This document shows positions 39,423-49,065 of a DNA stretch of 64,000 nt, piece by piece. Both the position numbers and the translations under genes were made by a program. Origin of the DNA: Hyaloraphidium curvatum SAG 235-1. Its lineage: Eukaryota > Fungi > Monoblepharomycota. Position 1 is the first letter of the stretch. Each line of letters starts with the position of its first letter. The DNA is taken from NCBI GenBank assembly GCA_025558095.1, contig JAIVFI010000004.1, forward strand, positions 248,001-312,000, read 5' to 3'. A model generated the notes under the pieces. That model searched no databases and had not been told where the DNA came from. It saw only the letters and a list, made by a program, of their open reading frames with translations.

Positions 39423-40289
39423 TCATTGGCCCTCGCCCTTCTTCCCCGTTTCCCGCGCGCTCTTGTCCCACCTCGCCCAGGTCCTCGACAGCCCCCTCAC
39501 GTCGTCCCACACCTCCCCCAACCAGCGCTTCCAGAGCTCCCCGCCCCTCTTCACCATCTCGGCCGCCTTCCCCCCGTCCGGCCACCCCTCCCCGCGGATC
39601 CCGAACCCGTCCTCTGCGATCCGTTTGAGCAGCGCCGCGGCGCGCCCCGAGTCCCACGAGGCGCGGAACCGCTCCGCGAACCGCAACGCCGGGGCCGCGT
39701 GCTTCTCGGCGAACGCGCGCAGGTCCGACACCGCGCCCGGCAGGAAATCGTCCCCCGGCGCCGACTGCTGGAGCTTGGTCGGCGGAGCGGGGGCCGTGAT
39801 CGTCTGCGGAGCGTGCTTGGGCACCAGCGTGCGGAACCGCACCACGATCGTGTCCTCCGTGATGTCCAGGCATTCCGCGCCCTCGGCCGGCGTCCCGGGC
39901 GGCTCGCGCATGCCCCACGCCTGGCCAACCATCGCGTCGACCGCGGAACGCTGCGTCACGGCGGCGCGGAAGGGGAGGAGCGGCGGGGCGGCGCCGGGCG
40001 GGCGCTCGCGGAGGGCGTCCGGGCGGCGGAGGAAGCACGTCTGCTCCACACGCAGCGCGGCGCCGATCTCCATTGTGGCCGAGAAGCAGACATCCCCGGC
40101 GGGCGGCCTGAAGAGCCGGACGTGCGGCGGCGGCGGGCGCGGCGCCGCGAGGAAGCGCGCCGCGGAATCGGCGGCCGCCGCCGCGGCGGGCGCCGAGAAG
40201 CCGTCGCGCTCGAGCTTCGCCCGGAACGCCGCGCGGAAGGCCTCGATGTCGGCCGCGCTGGCGGGCGGAACGCCGCCTGGAGGCTCCAT
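39423..40289 (-). CDS. Hypothetical protein (~290 aa, intronless)
   Basis: Open frame from MEPPGG with protein-like composition; no recognisable motif. Confidence 0.55.
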   Translation of the reverse strand: MEPPGGVPPASAADIEAFRAAFRAKLERDGFSAPAAAAAADSAARFLAAPRPPPPHVRLFRPPAGDVCFSATMEIGAALRVEQTCFLRRPDALRERPPGAAPPLLPFRAAVTQRSAVDAMVGQAWGMREPPGTPAEGAECLDITEDTIVVRFRTLVPKHAPQTITAPAPPTKLQQSAPGDDFLPGAVSDLRAFAEKHAAPALRFAERFRASWDSGRAAALLKRIAEDGFGIRGEGWPDGGKAAEMVKRGGELWKRWLGEVWDDVRGLSRTWARWDKSARETGKKGEGQ

Positions 40290-40461
40290 GTGTGCTGCGA
40301 GCGCTACTGCGACTGATGCCCGCGCTGATGCGCGCCCGCGCGCGCAGCTAGCACGCGATCGATCTCGGTTCCGCGGCCAGTTCCGCGAGGACGCCGGAAC
40401 GCCGCTCCCCTGGAATAGCCCTCCACGGAGCACTCATATTCACTCCCGAGCCCGTGTCGTG

Positions 40462-40935
40462 ATGGCTGCGCTGCAGGGCTACGATGGCTACCCTCCCGAG
40501 CCGTGCACGGAATGCCCCGAGTGCGACAACTTCCTAAAAGGCAGAGTGATCAACATCTGCGACTGGTGCGGCCATAATGCCAGTGTGCACAAGCCGAACC
40601 AGCAGGCGGCCGGTAAGATTCCCTGCTCGGCGCGTCTCCTCGCGCTTACCTTCCCAGGCCCTTCACACATTCCTGCGTTCAAGTACCATGGAATGCCTCC
40701 ACGACCAGGCCTTGGACCGCAAATGGGCCAGCAGGCACCCAAGCCGCCCGCGCCACACTCCGTGTTCCGGACCGCGATGGCTGCGCCGACGGGCTACGAC
40801 CCGAGTGGCTACCCTCTCGAGCCGTGCACGGAATGCCCCGAGTGCGACAACTTCCTTGAAGGCAGAGTGATCAACATCTGCGACTGGTGCGGCCATAATG
40901 CCAGTGTGCACAAGCGGAACCAGCAGGCGGCCGGT
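40462..40935 (+). repeat. Near-identical duplicated coding module (40462-40614 and 40777-40935)
   Basis: Both copies begin ATGGCTGCG, encode CTECPECDNFL.GRVINICDWCGHNASVHK.NQQAA and end at an equivalent splice donor; only a few nucleotide differences in the core. Confidence 0.92.
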
Positions 40936-43204
40936 GAGTGGTCTGGCTCGCGTATCTCGGGCCGGTGACATCAAGCCGTCATCCTCTCCTCTCCAGTAAT
41001 GTCGTACAGACCGGCCGCTTCCGATGCCTGGGTTCTGCGCTACGGGCTTGACGCGCAGATGAAGCTTCGCGCGGATTGCAGGAACTGCGACTGTGCGGTG
41101 TACGCGCGGCAGAGCATGGGGAATGGTTGCGGGAACCCGAAGTGCCGCCACCTCTCGACCGATCACCGCCGTGGGATCATCTCCCGCAGTACAGCATTGT
41201 GTGCATTGACCACGCTGCACCTTAGAGGTCATTGAGTTCTGCGAGATCGACAGACCCTACTACGAGTTCAGCAATTCCTACGTCTCCCCGTTCCTCGACG
41301 CAGAGGGCAAGCAATGGGCGACTTCGGAGCACTATTTCCAAGCGCGCAAGTTTTTTCCACACGCACCCTGGTTGATGGAGCAGATACGGAGGCTGCCGAC
41401 TCCGCGTGATGCGTTCGAGCTCGCTCAACAGCACCGGGCGCAGATGCGGCCCGACTGGCATCAAGGAGAGTCCCTCAAAGTCATGAAGGAAGCCGTGCAC
41501 CGCAAATTCGTGCAGAACAATGAGCTCCTGGTGAAGCTTCTGGACACGGGGGACGCGTACATCGTGGAGCACACTACCAATGACGCGTACTGGGGAGACG
41601 GAGGCGGCAACGGCCGTGGCCGCAACGAGCTCGGGAAGGCGCTCATGCAACTTCGAGACGAGCTCAATGGAAGGGTCCGCCAACCGATCAAGGATCCGAC
41701 CGCGAGACCGCCGGAGCCCGACCGGCGCCAGGAAGCAGAAACTGAGGCGCGGCGTCGCCGGGAAGAAGAGCTGACGCGCGAGCACCAAAGGTTGGAGTTC
41801 GAGCGGCTGCGGGCGGCGGATCAGGCTCGGGAGGCCGAGCGAGCGCGTATAGCAGAGGCCGAGCGCCAGAAGAAAGATGCGGAGCAGGAGGCGGCACGGC
41901 TGCAGCAGCGCGAGGCGGACAAGGCGGAAGCCCGCAGGAGGCACCAGCAGCTGGCCGACGAAGCTGCCCGCGTGCGGGAACAGGAGGCGGAGGTGGCCCG
42001 CCGCATGGAGGAGCTCCGGGTTCGGGAGCAGGAGGTGGAGAGGAGGAAGGCTGAGGTTGAGGAGATGGCCAAGCTCGCCCCCCTTTTGCGTGCAACGCCC
42101 TCCTCGGACTCCTCTGAGGCAACCAAGCTCCCCTCGGAACCCTCCCGATCGGATGAGGCGACTAAGCTCCCCTCGGAACCCTCCCGATCGCGTGCTTCCT
42201 CGGGCAGCGCCAAATCCGACCATGCGGCCTTCCTCTCCAAGCTCCGCATCACGAAGGACGAGGTGGCTTACTCCACCGACGCCACGGCAGTTCTCGGCGA
42301 GGGCAGCTTCGGCATCGTGTACCGCGGCCTGCTCAGAGGCGCGACGCGGGTTGCCGTCAAGGCGATCAAAGGTGACGTGACCCCCGAGACGGTGGCGATG
42401 TTCCTCAAGGAGATCGCGGTGTGGGACGGGCTGAATCAGCGGAACGGTGAGCCCTCGAGCCGTCTTTCGCCATCACGGGCTTAATCTTCCCCGCAGTGCT
42501 TCCGCTCCTGGCGTTTTGCGAGTCCCCGCCCCTACTGATTTCGGAGCTGACCGAGGGCAGCATGCGCTCCCGACTGGACGCGCTGCGCTGGGACCAGGCC
42601 GTTGGGCTCAGGTACCTTCGCGGGGTAGCCGCAGGGATGGCCTACCTGCATTCCTACAAGGTGCTCCACGGGGACCTCAAGTGTGCCAACATCATGATCG
42701 GTGGGACTGCCGGGCGCATCTCGGGTCGCTCATCTCATCCGGGCAATGGCAGACCACGACATCCCCAAGATCGCCGACTTTGGCCTCGCCAAGGTCCGCT
42801 CCCACCTCTCCCTCGGCTCCACCCGCGGCGACGGCGATGCCACCGGCGGCGGCGGCGGCACGCCCCCGTTCATGGCCCCCGAGCTCTGGCGCGGGGGCAA
42901 GCTCCGCACACCCGTGGACGTGTACGCGTTCGCGATGGTGTGCTACGAGGTCACCGACGAGGGAGGATACCCTTTCGAAGGGCTGTGGATGGCGGCAGTG
43001 GGTGGTCCTGCACGCCGGATTTGATCGATCACTGGAGTTCTTTTCCTTTGTAAGGTCAGCGAGGCCGTCCTGCGTGGGGACCGCCCCGAGCGCCCCGACA
43101 ACGCCGATGACAAGATGTGGGCGCTCATGGAGCGCATGTGGGCGCAGAGCGCGGCCGACAGGCCGACGTTCGTCGAGGTCTGCGCGGAGATGGAGCGGTG
43201 GTAG
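40462..43204 (+). CDS. Fusion protein: Cys/His repeats - NADAR (YbiA/RibX) - coiled coil - TKL-type protein kinase
   Basis: Phase-compatible GT-AG introns 40613-40657, 40934-40996, 41189-41225, 42447-42496, 42701-42752, 42998-43054. NADAR motifs FSN, SEHYFQARK, EHTTNDAYWG, GRNELGKALM. Kinase motifs GEGSFG, VAVK, HGDLKCAN, DFG, MAPE. Confidence 0.85.
42114..42190 (+). repeat. 39-bp in-frame tandem repeat (EATKLPSEPSRS x2) in the kinase linker
   Basis: Two copies of aagctcccctcggaaccctcccgatcg, 39 nt apart. Confidence 0.85.
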
Positions 43205-43234: not shown

Positions 43235-43800
43235 GGGGTTCTTGGAGAGGGCGGGTTTTGGCCTCCTGCGACGCCGATCCTGCACCTTGACGTAAGGACG
43301 ACAACGTGCTGATCGACGAGAACGGGGTCGCCAAGATCTCGGATTTCGGGATGTCCAAGATCCGGGCCACGGCCTTTCTACACTCCACGAAGCGTTCAGG
43401 AGGGACACCCGTCTTCACTTTCCCCCGAAAGTGGGATTGCCCCCCGAGCTCTTACGGCCATCCCGATCACTGACCGCCCCTTCCGCCCGCTCAGGCGTCG
43501 CCGCCGCGACCCAAGCCCGGCACCGCCACGGATCTTTACGCCTTCGCCATTGAGCTCCTCTCCGAAGACGATATTTTCCTCAGGGACCGGCTCATGGACG
43601 AGGAACTGATGGTCCCTGGGCACGGCATCGATTTGGAGCCCTTCGGCGCGCGTCTGCGGAGCGACCCGGCGTTCAGGCCCGAGCGGCCCCGTGGGGTACC
43701 GGACGCGACATGGGAGCTGATGAGGAGGTGTTGGGCGATGTATTCGGGGAGGTCGTGGCTGATCCTCCGGAGCACCGGCCGATCGCACGGAACTGCCATC
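43235..43800 (+). pseudogene. Fragmentary second TKL kinase domain
   Basis: Disjoint pieces VLGEGG.., DNVLIDENGVAKISDFGMSKIR..GGTPVF, ATDLYAFAI, RPERPRGVPDATWELMRRCWA in different frames; VAIK and HxD segments not found; in-frame stops immediately upstream of the DNVLID segment. Confidence 0.7.
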
Positions 43801-43944: not shown

Positions 43945-45717
43945 TCATTTCTTCGGCAGCTTCGGTTCCGGCAGATCGGCTTCGCCTTCCGACTGTCCGT
44001 GAACCGGCGCCTCAACCATCGCCCCTCTCCGCAGCCGCCCCGCCGCCGTCGCGCAGGTCCTGGAGCAGTAGTTGTACCCCTGAAGCTTCGCCCGGGTCTT
44101 GCACTGAGGGCACGCGATCTCCTCGGGGAGCTGCTCCCGCTGCCGCCTGTCTTCTCCCGTCCCGCCACCGAACGCCTCGAGCGCATCCCGTAGGCGCTCC
44201 TGGAGCGGGCCGTCGCTTTCCCCAGCAGCGGAAAGCAGCGTTCGCACGGCTTCCGCCATCCGTGCTTCGCCCTCGTCGAGGAGATCCGCGTAGGTCGGAT
44301 CGAGCAGGAAGGACGAGACGTCGGCAGCAAGGAAGCCCACGCGATCCAGGAACACGTCGAGCAGCCTGGCCGCCCGCGCGATCGCAGGGCCGTCGACGCC
44401 CCCAGGCGGCTGTGGTGCGAGAAAGACAAAGTCCAGATCGTCCCCCCACAGCTCCTGGAGCAGTAAATCGTCGAACAACTGCACCGCCGTCCCGATCGCC
44501 GCCCTCGTCCCTTGCCCGTCAGCGGCCGGCCTGCGCGCCCGGCGCACGCCGTCCACGAGCCGGTGGAACGTGTCGTCGGCGAGCGAGTACCCGACAAACA
44601 GCATGTGTTTGGTGATGAGCATGGCCTGGACGATGCCAAAGAGCGCCGTGGCGCGCTCGGGGAGGCCGAGGTAGTCGGCCCGGGTGAGCACCATGTCGCC
44701 GCGGGAGATGTCGCCGTGGAGCTTGAGCACCCACCGGCCCTCGGGCCCGATGGGCTCGTAGGGCAGCACGGCGACCTTGCGGCCGCCGGAGCGGCATGCA
44801 TCCTCGTAGAGCGTGTCGTAGTTGGTCGTGACCGCCTCGCGGGCGCCGAGGCCGGCGAGCAGCGCGTGGGCCAGGGCGTGGCGCTCCGAGCGTACGAGGT
44901 CCGCGAGCGCGGAGCGGTAGTTTGCATCGTCCTGGAATTTGCGGGCTACGAGGAGGGCCTGGTCGCGCACGTCCAGCGCGCGAAGGCGCTCCCGGTAGGA
45001 CGCGTCCATGCCCAGCGGGGCGGCGAGCTGCTCGATCAGCGCGTTCCACATCGGCAGGCCGGCCCCGGCGCTCACGCCGGCGCCGAGGAAAAGCACCAGG
45101 TCGCGGCGCTGGGCTGTGCCGGCGAGCCTTTCCGCCTGCGCATTCAGCGTCTCCGATCGCTCGCCCATGTCCCACCGCTGTGCATCGGGCGTCTTCTGCC
45201 TGGCCCGCTGGGCGGCGGCGTAGCCCACGGGACCGAACGCCACCAGCACCACGTCGACGCCCACGTCGCTTGCGGCCTTTGCCAGCCTCTCCACCAGCAC
45301 GGCATACACGGCGCCCTTTCGGCCCGCCATGCCGCCCGCGCCGGTGCCGACGACGTGCACGGCCACGCGCGGCGGGGGGCCCGCCGGTCTCTCGGCGTCT
45401 TTTGCGTACGCGGCGACGAACTCGGCGGCCCCGTCCGCGTACCATTCCGGGGGCCGGTTGCTGTGTCCCACCGCCCCGATCCAAATCGCCGGCGAACGCG
45501 GCCCGCCCGGCCGGAGCTGGAAGCACCGCACAGCATCGACCCAGCCGGCCGGCGGCGTCACGTCCGCGGGCAGCCGGCACTCGTCGGGCGCGAGCCCGAG
45601 CGCTGCGCGCCACCGCGGCGTGATGCGCAGCCCGCGGTCGGACGGCACGAGCACGGCGTCGCACACGAGCCGCGTGAGGTCGCCGTCGACGATGAAGAGG
45701 TGGCCGGGCGTCGCCAT
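43945..45717 (-). CDS. Macro-like + SIR2-like (SIR2_2, NADase-type) protein with C-terminal Zn finger
   Basis: GDLTRLVCDAVLVP and VAVHVVGTGAGG (Macro-like); LVLFLGAGVSAGAGLPMW, TTNYDTLYE, VLKLHGD, MLFVGYSLADDTF (SIR2); CPQC..YCSRTC; intronless 590 aa. Confidence 0.88.
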   Translation of the reverse strand: MATPGHLFIVDGDLTRLVCDAVLVPSDRGLRITPRWRAALGLAPDECRLPADVTPPAGWVDAVRCFQLRPGGPRSPAIWIGAVGHSNRPPEWYADGAAEFVAAYAKDAERPAGPPPRVAVHVVGTGAGGMAGRKGAVYAVLVERLAKAASDVGVDVVLVAFGPVGYAAAQRARQKTPDAQRWDMGERSETLNAQAERLAGTAQRRDLVLFLGAGVSAGAGLPMWNALIEQLAAPLGMDASYRERLRALDVRDQALLVARKFQDDANYRSALADLVRSERHALAHALLAGLGAREAVTTNYDTLYEDACRSGGRKVAVLPYEPIGPEGRWVLKLHGDISRGDMVLTRADYLGLPERATALFGIVQAMLITKHMLFVGYSLADDTFHRLVDGVRRARRPAADGQGTRAAIGTAVQLFDDLLLQELWGDDLDFVFLAPQPPGGVDGPAIARAARLLDVFLDRVGFLAADVSSFLLDPTYADLLDEGEARMAEAVRTLLSAAGESDGPLQERLRDALEAFGGGTGEDRRQREQLPEEIACPQCKTRAKLQGYNYCSRTCATAAGRLRRGAMVEAPVHGQSEGEADLPEPKLPKK

Positions 45718-45912: not shown

Positions 45913-46489
45913 CTAAGAAACGGACCAGTCGGCCGATATCGTGCACTCCCCCACGATGTTGCCAATGTTATCCGGGACAAAGAGCAGCGCGTTGAGCGAG
46001 TAGTTGCCCCGCTCCGTCCACTCTTCCGGGTACTGTTCGTGCGCAGTCAACCCGGCAATTCGCATCAGTTGTCTGCCCAGGGGCGGGGGTAGCCAAGCAA
46101 CCCACAATGACCTCATTCACAGCAAACGCACCCCAGCTGAACGTCCCCAGCTCCGACGCCCCGACGCTCCCGTCAAACAGCGAGGTATCCCCGCGGCGGA
46201 TGGAGACCGAGACGCTGCAGCGTTCCAGGAATACGTTGTCGGTGGGGAGGTCGGACCATGTGACCGTGGCGCGCACAGGCTGGCCCTGCGGGTATCTGTC
46301 AACTGTGCGATGTGCGGGCGCCAAGATCGCGCGTGTGATCTGTCGCACCGGGACGGGGGGGTTCGTTTCGCAGGACACCTCGATGGAGTAGTTCTTGGTG
46401 AAGCTGGGCGGGTTGTTCCCGGAGAGCGGCCGCGACGTGAACTCGTTGAACGTGAAAGTCCCGAAGCCGCGGACGGCGCCGACAGACAT
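45913..46489 (-). CDS. Small beta-rich orphan protein
   Basis: ORF MSVGAVRG..AVNE can splice (GT..CAG, ~46033-46110) to YPEEWTERGNYSLNALLFVPDNIGNIVGECTISADWSVS*. Confidence 0.55.
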
Positions 46490-46888: not shown

Positions 46889-48760
46889 TCACGCGTGCAG
46901 CATCGCCGACTGCAGCACCACTCCGACCGTCTGCGCGCCGCCCCCGGGCCGGTACTTGGCGTCCACGTTCTGGCACAGCACGTGCAGCCTCGGATCCCTC
47001 CCCAGCCTGTCCACCAGCTCGTCGAACCTGACCCTGTGCGGATCCTCCGCCAGCGCGTCGACCACGGCCACGGTGCACATGCCCTGCGACCGGCGGCCCC
47101 CGAGGTTCATGTCCAGCCCGGGGCCGACGTTGCCGATCAGCGCCGTGCGCGGGGGCAGGTCCGAGGCAACGGCAAAGGTGAAGCAGCCGTCGAGGATGAC
47201 GAGCTTGCGGCAGCGCAGGTCGCCGAGCGCGGGGAGCATGGCCGAGGGCTTGAGGAGGCCGCCTTCGACGACGAGGCTGCCGTCTTCGGTGCCGTGGCCC
47301 GAGTAGTGCAGGACGAAGAGGTCGTCTTTGCCGAGCTGGCCTCCTTCCTGGGCGATGGCGGCGCGGATGGCCTTGGGCTTGGCTTCCCTGCCGAAGAGCT
47401 TGGTGGTGGTGAAGCCGCGCTTCTGCAGTGCGGAGCGCATGACGTCGAGGTCGTGCTCCGGGCCCTGGAGGTTCCCGCCCGAGTGGCCGACGAGCAGGGC
47501 GCGGCCGCGGCCGGGCTGCACGGCGACGGACAGGCGGAACTTTTCGTTGCCGCCCAGGGTGATGACGGAGCCGTCCTTGAGCGGGACGTGCTTGCCCGGC
47601 TGCGCTTTGGTGCCGTCGACCAGGGTCCCGTTGGACGAGTTGAGGTCGACGATGGAGAAGCCGTGCCTGCCCTTGGCATTCTCGGGCGGGTACAGGAGCG
47701 CGTGGTTCCTGCTGATGCGGATGTTGTCCGAAACCATGATGGCCAGCTGGGCGTCGCGGATGTTCCCCGACAGCGCGCGCGCGCCGTGGTCCTCGACGCC
47801 CTCGGACCTGCCGAGGTGCACGACGCAGTCGACGGTGAACTCGGGCCCGCGCGGGTTGCCCGACGAATCGAGCTGCCTGAGCTTGCCGACGGTCTCGCCG
47901 GCGCGGGCATGCACGGGCCGCGGCGGAGTCGGCGACACGGGCCTGCCCGAGCCGAAGGCGTCGAACAGCTTGCGCACCTCGGGGCTCGTGGCGACCTCCG
48001 CGGCGGTCCTGCCGGCCTTGTTCCTGCGCCTGACGTCGACGCGGTCCGTGCGCGAGAGCAGCAGCTTGACGGCGACGTCGTGGCCGTTGCGGCTGGCGAC
48101 CATCAGGCCGGTGTTGCCCTCGAGGTCGACTGCGTTAACGTCGACGCGCGAGCTGCCGAGCAGCAGCAGCAGCACGTTTGCTGCGTCGCCGTTGAGGCAG
48201 GCTGCGATGAAGCCGGTGTCGCCGGCTGCGGTGTGCACGTTGACGTTGACGCGGCGATCGGCCAGCAGCAGCGCGACGACCTCTGAGCGGCCGGTTGCGC
48301 ACGCGGCCACGAAGGGCGTGTAGCCGCCGTCGTCTGCCTTGTTTGCGTCCGCGCGGCCGTCGAGCAGCAGCGCGCCGGCGACGTCCCCGTGGCCCTCCTG
48401 CGCGGCGACGAACAATGCCGTGCGGCCGTCGGCGTCCGCCGCGTCTGCGTCGACGCGGCGATCGGCGAGCAGCGCGCGCGCGGCGTCCGCGGCGCCGAGG
48501 CTGCACGCGACGAGCAGCGGCGTGGCGCCGCCCGGCCCGGCCGCGTCGGGGTCGACGCGGCGATCGCCCAGCAAAACACGCACGGCGTCCGCGCTGCCGC
48601 CCATCGCCGCGTAGTGCAGCGGCGTCGCGCCGTCGCCGTCGCGCGCCGCGGGGTCGACGTCGGGCCGCGCGAGGAGCTCCCGCATCCGCGCCACATCGCC
48701 GCTCGCGCTCGCCTCGAACAGCTTGAGCGTCTTGGTCGGCTTGGACCCGTTGTTGCCCAT
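46889..48760 (-). CDS. Ankyrin repeat - FHA - caspase-like (peptidase C14) protein with N-myristoylation motif
   Basis: MGNNGS start; ~7-8 ankyrin repeats (GATPLHYAA, GRTALFVAA, GNTGLMVAS); FHA LGRS..ISRNHA..SSNGTLVDG; caspase RALLVG, HYSGHG, VILDGC; intronless. Confidence 0.88.
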   Translation of the reverse strand: MGNNGSKPTKTLKLFEASASGDVARMRELLARPDVDPAARDGDGATPLHYAAMGGSADAVRVLLGDRRVDPDAAGPGGATPLLVACSLGAADAARALLADRRVDADAADADGRTALFVAAQEGHGDVAGALLLDGRADANKADDGGYTPFVAACATGRSEVVALLLADRRVNVNVHTAAGDTGFIAACLNGDAANVLLLLLGSSRVDVNAVDLEGNTGLMVASRNGHDVAVKLLLSRTDRVDVRRRNKAGRTAAEVATSPEVRKLFDAFGSGRPVSPTPPRPVHARAGETVGKLRQLDSSGNPRGPEFTVDCVVHLGRSEGVEDHGARALSGNIRDAQLAIMVSDNIRISRNHALLYPPENAKGRHGFSIVDLNSSNGTLVDGTKAQPGKHVPLKDGSVITLGGNEKFRLSVAVQPGRGRALLVGHSGGNLQGPEHDLDVMRSALQKRGFTTTKLFGREAKPKAIRAAIAQEGGQLGKDDLFVLHYSGHGTEDGSLVVEGGLLKPSAMLPALGDLRCRKLVILDGCFTFAVASDLPPRTALIGNVGPGLDMNLGGRRSQGMCTVAVVDALAEDPHRVRFDELVDRLGRDPRLHVLCQNVDAKYRPGGGAQTVGVVLQSAMLHA

Positions 48761-49065
48761 CGCGGTTTGCTGATGACTGATTGCGAGCACCGACGATGAG
48801 GACGACGTCGAGGCGGTGAGACTGATCGCGATCGCGGGGAAACTCCAGCACCCACCGCCTTCCGCCGATCTCGACGTAGAGGCACTCGAGGCAAGACCTA
48901 TGAAGGAGCAGTTCACTCTCTTTCGCGTTCGCGTTATCACTCGCAGCAGTGGCGGCGGGTCCAGACCGTCTCCCAGCCGCAATCGCGATCGATGCCTTGA
49001 CTGACTGACTGACTTTGCCCTGACTTTACCCACGACCGTTGCGGAGCACATCCGGCCCGCCAGAC

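Follow-up and report, generated by a model that had tools for sequence, protein, structure and literature searches.

Can an enzyme that removes ADP-ribose from nucleic-acid bases be wired directly to a protein kinase? The question is raised by a gene at positions 40462-43204, on the forward strand, of a 64,000-nucleotide stretch of the Hyaloraphidium curvatum SAG 235-1 genome (contig JAIVFI010000004.1, positions 248,001 to 312,000; hereafter the window), which was predicted from the sequence to join a NADAR domain to a TKL-type kinase. It was recognized only recently that NADAR hydrolases can erase ADP-ribose from nucleic-acid bases. Every NADAR subtype assayed removes ADP-ribose from guanine in vitro, and what these enzymes do in eukaryotes has been described as unknown (PMC11125620). 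A 2026 review notes that fungi have yet to yield an experimentally identified NADAR (PMC13720257).

One expressed gene joins NADAR and kinase

A single expressed, correctly spliced gene of H. curvatum joins NADAR and kinase. Its seven exons, all on the forward strand, sum to 2421 nt, corresponding to 806 codons plus a stop, in frame. The six introns are short (45-63 nt), begin with GT and end with AG, and are all removed in contigs of a public run, bearing out the six introns originally predicted. Exon 1 (40462-40612) contains the start codon and zinc module 1 and is followed by intron 1 (40613-40657, 45 nt), which is removed at a spliced contig joint (40611>40657). Exon 2 (40658-40933), delimited by contigs and module alignment, encodes a Pro/Gln-rich spacer and zinc module 2, and is separated by intron 2 (40934-40996, 63 nt) from exon 3 (40997-41170), which encodes zinc module 3 and lies on the same contig as NADAR. 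Beyond intron 3 (41171-41225, 55 nt), exon 4 (41226-42446) carries NADAR, a long helix, a linker and the kinase N-lobe in one frame. The remainder of the kinase is encoded, as placed by profile matches, in exon 5 (42497-42700; hinge to catalytic loop, also seen in contigs), exon 6 (42753-42997; DFG, a long Gly-rich activation loop and APE) and exon 7 (43055-43204; end of the C-lobe and a TAG stop at 43202-43204). The intervening introns 4 (42447-42496, 50 nt) and 6 (42998-43054, 57 nt) are removed in contigs. Intron 5 (42701-42752, 52 nt) is inferred from a low-depth joint (42698>42752, depth 25), a loose end at 42700 matching sequence from 42753, and its GT..AG ends.

The original prediction placed NADAR and the kinase N-lobe in one open reading frame at 41372-42446. 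The shared frame holds, with Pfam matches to both in a stop-free stretch from 41210 to 42481; position 41372 is merely the first TTG, and the exon itself begins at 41226. A single contig of 1251 nt contains module 3, NADAR and the entire helix (40996-42254), and the kinase is covered by further overlapping contigs of similar depth (590-712). No contig in the public run joins NADAR to the kinase catalytic core; breaks occur at 42254 and 42436. The predicted protein is soluble and, from its sequence and models, has five parts: zinc modules, NADAR, charged helix, Ser/Pro linker and kinase. Searches of the spliced model were run exon by exon, and residue numbers are arithmetic on exon lengths. No identical protein was found among the database relatives retrieved.

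The NADAR domain belongs to the YbiA family and has a complete catalytic core

The NADAR domain spans approximately residues 202-351 (41228-41677). It matches PF08719 over profile positions 2-162 of 163 (E 1.5e-32; 113.5 bits against a cut-off of 35.1) and TIGR02464 (106 bits against a cut-off of 73.7), and a sequence search returned E. coli YbiA (2B3W) at E 7e-31. AlphaFold2 (AF2) modeled the domain with high confidence (pLDDT 94-98), and the predicted structure has the helical core and two small flanking sheets of the YbiA fold. Foldseek aligned it to 2B3W (E 2.8e-11, TM 0.79, rmsd 1.9) and to the P. nicotianae NADAR structure 8BAU (TM 0.67).

Every NADAR and kinase motif quoted in the original prediction was found at verified coordinates. 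The NADAR motifs include SEHYFQARK (41324-41350) and IVEHTTNDAYWG (41561-41596). Alignment to 2B3W and 8BAU identifies the core Glu (41327-41329) and Lys (41348-41350), as well as the last-strand Glu within VEHT (41567-41569); residue mapping adds Trp (41456-41458), Asp (41582-41584) and a second Trp (41591-41593). Equivalents of P. nicotianae E43, K50, W89, E125, D130 and W133, residues whose roles are defined in PMC11543638, are thus all kept. The last-strand Glu is a hallmark of the YbiA family (PMC11125620), a position occupied by Asp in BC4488 and DarT1-linked NADARs and by His in phage NADARs (PMC11125620, PMC11543638). With the catalytic Glu, the Lys and the last-strand Glu all present, the H. 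curvatum domain is assigned by sequence and predicted fold to the YbiA family. We also considered a DarT1-associated NADAR antitoxin, a reading opposed by the last-strand Glu in place of Asp and by the lack of an adjoining transferase gene. DarT (PF14487) had no match in the H. curvatum genome; the control genomes likewise gave none, so this absence is weak.

Several adenine- and diphosphate-contacting residues of the P. nicotianae NADAR are replaced (K75->F, G78->A, R79->Q, Y84->Q, D86->R and R93->S). Since these ADP-ribose contacts differ, the substrate may be something other than ADP-ribosyl-guanine. The genome contains two NADAR loci, of which the second is of a different type (27% identity), leaving the NADAR of the fusion as the sole copy of its type.

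Three zinc modules precede NADAR

Upstream of NADAR are three Cys/His modules, at 40504-40590 (ligand-type residues C15 to H43), 40825-40911 and 41077-41166, placed by module alignment and the third also by a contig. Six Cys/His columns are invariant in the module alignment, and the first NADAR strand begins three residues after the end of module 3. Module 2 is, judging from DNA identity, a recent exon duplicate of module 1 (91% between 40462-40638 and 40777-40958). The modules fit no named class: Pfam gave sub-threshold zinc-ribbon hints alone, and a Foldseek search of the predicted fold (AF2 pLDDT 70) against the PDB returned no match at E <=0.001, just zinc-ribbon-like noise. A search of the H. 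curvatum genome found no such modules elsewhere.

A charged helix and a flexible linker connect NADAR to the kinase

NADAR is followed by a helix of about 122 residues rich in Glu, Arg, Ala and Gln (41723-42088), which AF2 predicts with high confidence (residues 166-287 of the exon 4 product, pLDDT >92). The original prediction described this segment as a long coiled coil through which the kinase might dimerize. The long helix is retained in our model, but its residue content does not fit a coiled coil: 55% of residues are charged (E 24%, R 23%) and 12.6% are hydrophobic (LIVMFYW), and in the best register only 25% of a/d positions are hydrophobic. There are 51 opposite-charge pairs at i+3 or i+4 within 111 residues. 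By composition and a monomer model, the segment looks like an ER/K-type single alpha-helix rather than a heptad coiled coil, and dimerization is unsupported because the helix lacks a heptad core. A homodimer prediction for the helix scored 0.26 against a mark of 0.32, a value that counts neither for nor against a dimer.

Between the helix and the kinase is a Ser/Pro-rich linker (42089-42283) that contains a tandem 12-residue repeat (42116-42190) and is probably disordered (pLDDT <50 for residues 288-329 of the exon 4 product). Look-alikes of the exon 4 product in the ESM Atlas consisted of weak kinase-fragment rows alone (0.83 or lower).

The kinase is an intact member of a modular, lineage-specific family

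The kinase N-lobe occupies the end of exon 4 (42284-42446, Pfam). Together, the four kinase exons cover positions 4-257 of the PK_Tyr_Ser-Thr profile, the later three accounting for positions 67-257, and three of the four score higher with this profile than with Pkinase. All elements of a complete catalytic domain are present: the G-loop GEGSFG (42296-42313), VAVK (42350-42361) with its beta3 Lys (42359-42361), the alphaC Glu, the HxD..N loop as HGDLKCAN (42667-42690), DFG (42776-42784) and APE (42875-42883). The HGDLKCAN sequence makes this TKL-like kinase a non-RD one of Ser/Thr type. Many immune kinases are of the non-RD type. Distant matches are annotated TKL-ccin, and the nearest solved structures, obtained with the kinase domain of a paralog (residues 285-551) as a proxy query, are tyrosine kinases.

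At least 149 six-frame matches to this kinase family occur in the H. curvatum genome. Annotated paralogs are single proteins that run from an N-terminal module (LRR_6, Ank, RCC1 or Sel1) to the kinase. HGD is present in all members examined, many of which also show an ER/K-rich segment ahead of the kinase. From these sequences, the family is large, lineage-specific and built with interchangeable N-terminal modules. The fusion gene shares its helix-linker-kinase cassette, conserved intron positions and HGD. In paralogs such as KAI9029127.1, the cassette is 76.5% identical in DNA, introns included, and amino-acid identity is 86-94% in the kinase-core exons and 78% in the last exon. A comparison with the nearest paralog gave dN/dS of 0.21 at dS 0.57; the catalytic exon taken separately gave about 0.1.

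The gene is a chimera of a kinase cassette and an older zinc module-NADAR architecture

Sequence comparison shows the gene to be a chimera of two sources. The helix-linker-kinase cassette, with its three introns, derives from the lineage-specific kinase family. Because protein homology to LRR-kinase paralogs starts near 41795 and DNA homology at 41939, the latter continuing through the introns to the stop codon, the fusion junction is placed inside the helix. The zinc module-NADAR half is an older eukaryotic architecture that is also present in Jimgerdemannia and Soliformovum. In Jimgerdemannia flammicorona (RUP45442.1) and in Soliformovum irregulare, a protein has the same Cys/His module directly upstream of the same NADAR type (up to 57% identity) and, unlike the fusion, no kinase.

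In Jimgerdemannia, the NADAR gene is head-to-head with a gene for a WW-PARP. More generally, the closest NADAR relatives adjoin genes for tankyrase-like PARPs in six of seven informative loci; these PARPs are mutually homologous and keep the H-Y-E triad, and one has a zinc-finger type in common with its NADAR neighbor. The closeness of these relatives is defined by identity, architecture and a weak topology: in a tree of 260 NADAR domains, the window domain groups with two others (P0021 and P0037) at a support of 80, within a poorly resolved tree (supports 80, 3, 73 and 0) whose deeper branches are unsettled. The view that NADARs are usually stand-alone needs qualification for this type, which normally has N-terminal zinc modules and pairing with a PARP gene. 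A one-protein query and a four-row profile did not find the NADAR-linked PARP type in the H. curvatum genome; its three PARP Pfam matches resemble another type, with an N-terminal Cys-rich region.

NADAR-kinase combinations are rare

The original prediction knew of no characterized protein with this architecture, and the survey agrees: the combination is rare and uncharacterized among NADAR relatives. None of 84 relatives of 233-742 aa combines NADAR with a kinase, one protein among the best 150 representatives does so, and literature searches for NADAR combined with kinase, NLR or TKL returned nothing relevant. The H. curvatum fusion is present in one genome only. Other NADAR-kinase proteins were found only in one mushroom, Collybiopsis confluens (KAF5386369.1, D9757_006627), where a TKL-ccin kinase from an expanded, domain-shuffling HGD-type family precedes NADAR. 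These proteins have the reverse order and lack both zinc modules and an ER/K helix. Their NADAR has other residues in place of the two catalytic glutamates and is therefore probably a pseudo-enzyme. By sequence, this combination arose independently. Basidiomycetes contain NADAR-like domains fused to TKL kinases or MLKL_N, with the catalytic glutamates lost.

Neighboring genes

The NADAR-kinase gene has as neighbors a ThsA-like SIR2 gene and an ankyrin-FHA-caspase gene, the latter at 46889-49051 on the minus strand. Among defense families, the best match of the SIR2 neighbor is the Thoeris ThsA SIR2 (E 4e-23). This gene is convergent with the NADAR-kinase gene, and a contig shows that their transcripts overlap at the 3' ends. 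Pfam found no macro domain in the SIR2 neighbor, and a PDB search offered no more than a macroH2A hint (E 0.91). Immediately downstream of the NADAR-kinase gene is the decayed remnant of a kinase.

Discussion

What might such a protein do? The interpretation we favor, tentatively and at a little under an even chance, is that the fusion is an input variant of a modular sensor-kinase, in which the zinc-NADAR half couples ADP-ribose-type marks to phospho-signaling. The NADAR half would function as an eraser or reader, acting on an N-glycosidic adduct of ADP-ribosyl type that most probably sits on a nucleic-acid base, and the zinc modules would help to hold the modified substrate. NADAR would take the place of the input module of the kinase family. 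On engaging a modified substrate, NADAR and the zinc modules could position or release the kinase, tethered by a stiff helix of about 16-18 nm and the flexible linker. The kinase would then phosphorylate proteins at the marked site, and ADP-ribose-type marks would thereby be coupled to phospho-signaling. As the partner PARP type was not detected, the marks may come from other enzymes, own or foreign.

Because the kinase family shuffles domains freely, an odd fusion could also persist without functional coupling. An uncoupled or merely regulatory fusion is the less likely reading, yet one to be taken seriously: NADAR would go on doing housekeeping work, for example in the damage control of ribosyl N-glycosides or by reversing endogenous ADP-ribosylation, and a kinase cassette acquired by chance recombination in a helix-coding repeat would at most regulate the enzyme by autophosphorylation. 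That NADAR passes the cut-off of TIGR02464, a riboflavin-intermediate N-glycosidase model, fits such a role, as do the junction in low-complexity helix-coding DNA, the free shuffling just mentioned and the kinase remnant downstream, suggestive of a locus in flux. Against this stand the intactness of both halves and purifying selection on the kinase at dS 0.57, which mark the gene as no fresh accident; in addition, NADAR sits at the N-terminal position where every paralog has a partner-binding module, and NADAR and a TKL kinase were combined independently in Collybiopsis. Production of separate NADAR and kinase products, by an internal start or processing, is very improbable. It would accommodate the contig breaks at 42254 and 42436, as contigs cannot show transcript ends, but the frame is open throughout 41226-42446, the contigs overlap at similar depth, the breaks coincide with the onset of paralog similarity, as expected of a k-mer graph, and each annotated paralog is a single protein running from N-module to kinase.

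The original prediction went further, proposing that NADAR senses an invader's ADP-ribosylating toxin or serves as an integrated decoy for it, with the kinase dimerizing through a coiled coil. We consider this improbable. Its sensor component finds some support in a general form, as an input domain, from the swappable N-terminal modules and from the basidiomycete NADAR fusions to kinases or MLKL_N, whose missing catalytic glutamates are what pure sensors would be expected to show; a non-RD kinase, the ThsA-like SIR2 and ankyrin-FHA-caspase neighbors, and the failure to find a cognate PARP in the H. curvatum genome also lean this way. The decoy component is not supported, as the core catalytic residues are all kept and there is no separate copy of this NADAR type to mimic. 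The helix lacks a heptad core, and gene adjacency in one genome is weak evidence in a eukaryote. Pfam found no NACHT or NB-ARC domain in any exon. Similarly doubtful is a small-molecule sensor, in which NADAR would bind a soluble NAD-derived nucleotide (ADP-ribose or a cyclic or isomeric derivative, with the ThsA-like SIR2 a possible source), gate the kinase and degrade the signal. The Thoeris ThsA match of the SIR2 neighbor and the 3' overlap of the two transcripts are compatible with it, and soluble ADP-ribose derivatives have been proposed as targets of viral NADARs (PMC9503650); yet macromolecular substrates are indicated by the zinc modules and by the pairing of relatives with PARPs, the residues for diphosphate and adenine contact are replaced, and the SIR2 adjacency is known from a single case.

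We also speculate that a surveillance kinase, an FHA-caspase and a SIR2 NADase could form a three-gene module leading from NAD and ADP-ribose to cell death in an early-diverging fungus, an idea that we regard as a long shot. A PARP-partnered eraser would have lost its writer in the H. curvatum lineage, and NADAR would instead read nucleic-acid ADP-ribose marks left by viral or bacterial transferases or by stress. The phosphorylated kinase targets could then be read by the phospho-threonine-binding FHA domain of the neighboring ankyrin-FHA-caspase.

A single unusual fusion is not in itself surprising, because the host kinase family shuffles domains freely. The H. curvatum gene nevertheless provides a concrete, expressed case, with both halves intact-looking, of a predicted NADAR eraser wired to a protein kinase, and the idea that ADP-ribose marks feed phospho-signaling becomes directly testable with two recombinant domains. 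Its importance may be broader, in that amoebae and early fungi repeatedly encode the same NADAR type next to a tankyrase-like PARP. Together, the PARP-paired NADARs and the catalytically dead basidiomycete NADARs, fused to kinases and to a killing domain of MLKL type, point to an unexplored writer, eraser and reader system in microbial eukaryotes.

Comparison with known systems

Plant kinase-fusion resistance proteins and integrated-domain immune receptors likewise combine a kinase with an unusual "integrated" domain in a fast-evolving family. The likeness seen is one of architecture and does not extend to an immune role, pathogen effectors or a guarded target. Within H. curvatum, the N-terminal module of the paralogs is a partner-binding repeat scaffold, whereas the fusion gene has an enzyme domain and zinc modules in its place. 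DarT1-NADAR (DarTG1) and YarT-YbiA are pairs of a NADAR and an ADP-ribosyltransferase, and the relatives of the H. curvatum NADAR are paired likewise, with transferases of PARP type. The bacterial pairs are operons, whereas the H. curvatum gene has no adjoining transferase gene, and DarT1-linked NADARs have Asp at the last-strand position where H. curvatum has Glu. The closest structural counterparts are E. coli YbiA (2B3W) and the P. nicotianae NADAR (8BAU), whose fold and core catalytic residues match those of H. curvatum, although several ADP-ribose-contact residues of 8BAU are replaced. Both of these proteins are free-standing; in H. curvatum, the NADAR is set between three zinc modules and a helix-kinase.

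Transcript support for a NADAR-kinase fusion

The original prediction placed a NADAR domain and a kinase N-lobe in one uninterrupted open reading frame within the gene at 40462-43204 (+) of the window (G000:C4:248001-312000). Our analysis confirmed this arrangement: Pfam detects a NADAR domain that is nearly complete (PF08719, E = 1.5e-32), together with the kinase N-lobe, in a stop-free frame at 41210-42481, and every predicted NADAR and kinase motif was found at verified coordinates. Three more pieces complete the kinase, bringing Pfam coverage of the PK_Tyr_Ser-Thr profile to positions 4-257 in total.

One public sequencing run (X1) contains 76% of the words sampled. Its assembled contigs skip short GT..AG segments, indicating that the run is RNA-derived, and all six predicted introns are absent from them. 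Introns 1 to 4 (40613-40657, 40934-40996, 41171-41225 and 42447-42496) and intron 6 (42998-43054), all on the plus strand, are spliced out with GT..AG ends; intron 5 (42701-42752, +) appears as a low-depth joint (depth 25) and a loose end, read with GT..AG ends. The exons measure 151, 276, 174, 1221, 204, 245 and 150 nt, a sum of 2421 nt or 806 codons plus the stop, with the frame kept at every junction. The third of the zinc modules preceding NADAR, the NADAR domain itself and the whole of the helix that follows are joined in a single 1251-nt contig. Contigs of similar depth overlap it in a chain, one link spanning 42235-42436 and the next reaching from ~42412 over intron 4 as far as 42700. 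Among the X1 contigs, none runs singly from NADAR into the kinase core, and transcript ends are not visible; contig breaks coincide exactly with the start of paralog similarity. The fusion is real. Large protein searches, in which the spliced model was queried exon by exon rather than as a joined protein, returned same-species paralogs and no identical or near-identical protein, and the gene may be absent from public annotation.

An N-terminal half with a probable role in ADP-ribose chemistry

E. coli YbiA aligns with the NADAR domain along the latter's full length (E = 7e-31); the alignment with the P. nicotianae NADAR is weaker. Its AF2 model (pLDDT 94-98) matches the YbiA structure 2B3W with a TM score of 0.79 and an rmsd of 1.9 Å, and the P. 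nicotianae structure 8BAU with a TM score of 0.67. Roles have been described for P. nicotianae residues including E43, K50, W89, E125, D130 and W133 (PMC11543638), and equivalents of all of these are present in the H. curvatum domain. It also has the last-strand Glu that marks the YbiA family (PMC11125620), which assigns it to that family. Relative to 8BAU, several adenine- and diphosphate-contact residues are substituted, and its true substrate may therefore not be ADP-ribosyl-guanine. The proposal that the domain serves as a decoy did not hold up in the available tests: the catalytic core is kept, and the only other NADAR found in the 31.9-Mb, 55-contig genome (G000:C2:154955-155407) is free-standing and of a different type, with 27% identity.

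Ahead of NADAR stand three zinc modules with the pattern C-x2-C-x(1-2)-C ... C-x(2-4)-C-x-H-x4-H. Modules 1 and 2 are 91% identical in DNA, a likeness that reaches into the intron donor and points to a recent exon duplication. Neither Pfam nor Foldseek assigned the module to a class, and no further copies were found elsewhere in the H. curvatum genome. Jimgerdemannia flammicorona (57% identity), Soliformovum irregulare and other contigs also carry this module ahead of a NADAR of the same type, a distribution which indicates that the N-terminal half is an old eukaryotic architecture.

Among loci encoding the nearest relatives of this NADAR, seven had usable context. Their sources are a mucoromycote fungus, a genome assembly and several contigs of metagenomes or run assemblies; an amoeba-type Dicty_CAR gene lies near one of the loci. 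In six of the seven, a gene with a PARP catalytic domain is an immediate or near neighbor of NADAR. A WW-PARP gene stands head-to-head with NADAR P0019 in Jimgerdemannia (L019, 1298-5743), and in L023 (2905-8149) the PARP gene lies between two NADAR genes (P0021 and P0037), with a Sel1-kinase two genes beyond. The PARP gene is ~800 bp from P0022 in L026 (7001-9234), close upstream of P0106 on the opposite strand in L027 (5477-8064), and immediately downstream of P0115 in L028/L029 (L028:667-3491), while three PARP-like segments surround P0029 in L030 (2779-9948). No PARP lies beside P0014 in L025. These NADAR-linked PARPs are mutually homologous (E = 1e-21 to 1e-56), keep the H-Y-E triad together with four invariant Cys, and have tankyrase as their nearest solved structure; that of L023 carries the same zinc-finger type as its NADAR neighbor. 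The adjacency resembles a writer/eraser pair conserved in eukaryotes, of which we found no description, and this signature lends support to an ADP-ribose-related role for NADARs of this type. With the queries used, no member of the NADAR-linked PARP type was found in the H. curvatum genome. The only three PARP-domain matches there (G000:C30:412425-414341, G000:C7:432518-434434 and G000:C42:33407-35320) are paralogous ORFs of ~640 aa whose N-terminal region is Cys-rich; they seem to represent another PARP type and may be PARP6/8-like.

A probable spacer helix and a modular kinase

Residues 166-287 of the exon-4 product are predicted to form one helix (AF2, pLDDT >92), originally proposed to be a coiled coil through which the kinase dimerizes. 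This proposal found no support in the 111-residue helix core, which is 24% E, 23% R, 19% A and 10% Q. Its residues are 55% charged and just 12.6% large-hydrophobic, and hydrophobic residues fill only 25% of the a/d positions when the most favorable heptad register is taken. Such a composition argues for an ER/K single alpha-helix, a stiff spacer, rather than a dimerizing coiled coil. Before the kinase, the linker at 42116-42190 (+) contains two perfect tandem copies of a 12-residue Ser/Pro-rich unit, of which the nearest paralog has one.

The kinase has at least 149 six-frame matches in the H. curvatum genome, and its closest annotated relatives bear N-terminal LRR_6, ankyrin, RCC1 or Sel1 modules. 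One paralog is the H. curvatum protein KAI9029127.1, which contig C6 encodes at 99% identity; this assigns the genome to that early-diverging, chytrid-like fungus or to a very close strain. All family members examined have HGD, making them non-RD kinases, and in many family members an ER/K-rich stretch precedes the kinase. DNA homology to the nearest paralogs (76.5% identity) starts at 41939 and continues without a gap, through the introns, as far as the stop codon, and protein homology begins near 41795; these starts place the fusion junction inside helix-coding, low-complexity DNA. Summed over exons, comparison with the nearest paralog gives a dS of 0.57 and a dN/dS of 0.21, falling to ~0.1 in the catalytic-loop exon; the cassette is neither new nor decaying. 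Just 3' of the stop codon, at 43291-43800 (+), is a decayed second kinase comprising a catalytic loop-to-DFG piece and a remnant of the C-lobe lying in a different frame; transcripts cover it, but splicing of its GT..AG intron (43431-43494) disrupts the kinase frame.

Genomic neighborhood

Convergent with the fusion gene is an intronless 590-aa ORF (43945-45717, -) whose SIR2_2 domain is closest to that of Thoeris ThsA (PADLOC, E = 4e-23), and the two transcripts merge in one X1 contig. A proposed N-terminal macro domain in this ORF was not confirmed: Pfam was silent and a PDB search gave only a hint at E = 0.91. The next gene (46889-49051, -) encodes 720 aa with ankyrin repeats, an FHA domain and a caspase domain (Peptidase_C14). 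FHA domains bind phospho-threonine, and we speculate that this product could read the output of the nearby kinase. The adjacency of both genes, seen once only, is suggestive. A small ORF at 45968-46489 contains a 73-nt intron (46033-46105) with CT..AC ends, that is, on the minus strand, spliced out in RNA contigs.

Upstream genes are ordinary-looking (BAH, MYND, mitochondrial carrier). The divergent 336-aa ORF at 39423-40433 (-) has no Pfam match, and its translation resembles a real protein. Its start, at 40433 or at the following in-frame Met (near 40292), is ~170-330 nt upstream of the fusion's start codon, so a promoter region may be common to both genes.

A probable new input variant, compared with other NADAR fusions

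The original observation is confirmed and its interpretation supported in part. We favor reading the protein as a new input variant within a modular family of kinases. We infer every functional step of this scheme, in which zinc modules and a PARP-partner eraser NADAR, predicted to be still catalytic, would act as the input.

The searches show the architecture to be rare. None of 84 NADAR relatives (233-742 aa) contains a kinase; their partners include Macro, Nudix and ankyrin. In a library of 1.84 billion proteins, one of the best 150 representatives combines NADAR and kinase (Collybiopsis confluens KAF5386369.1), and a neighboring gene in that species encodes a second such protein. The Collybiopsis proteins differ in that their kinases are of the TKL-ccin family and come first in order. 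Unlike in H. curvatum, both catalytic glutamates are gone from their NADARs and from a Phanerochaete MLKL_N-NADAR. In the basidiomycete NADARs P0118 (1150-1330, 2225-2402), P0250 (490-650) and P0013 (235-385), the SEH Glu is replaced by A, S or Q and the VEH Glu by W, F or Y. Judged by these replacements, the basidiomycete NADARs fused to TKL-ccin kinases or to the MLKL_N killing domain are probably pseudo-enzymes acting as binders. The Collybiopsis and Phanerochaete fusions indicate that fungi have repeatedly recruited NADAR-like domains, probably as pseudo-enzymes, to modules for signaling or killing; among these fungal fusions, only the H. curvatum NADAR retains a catalytic appearance.
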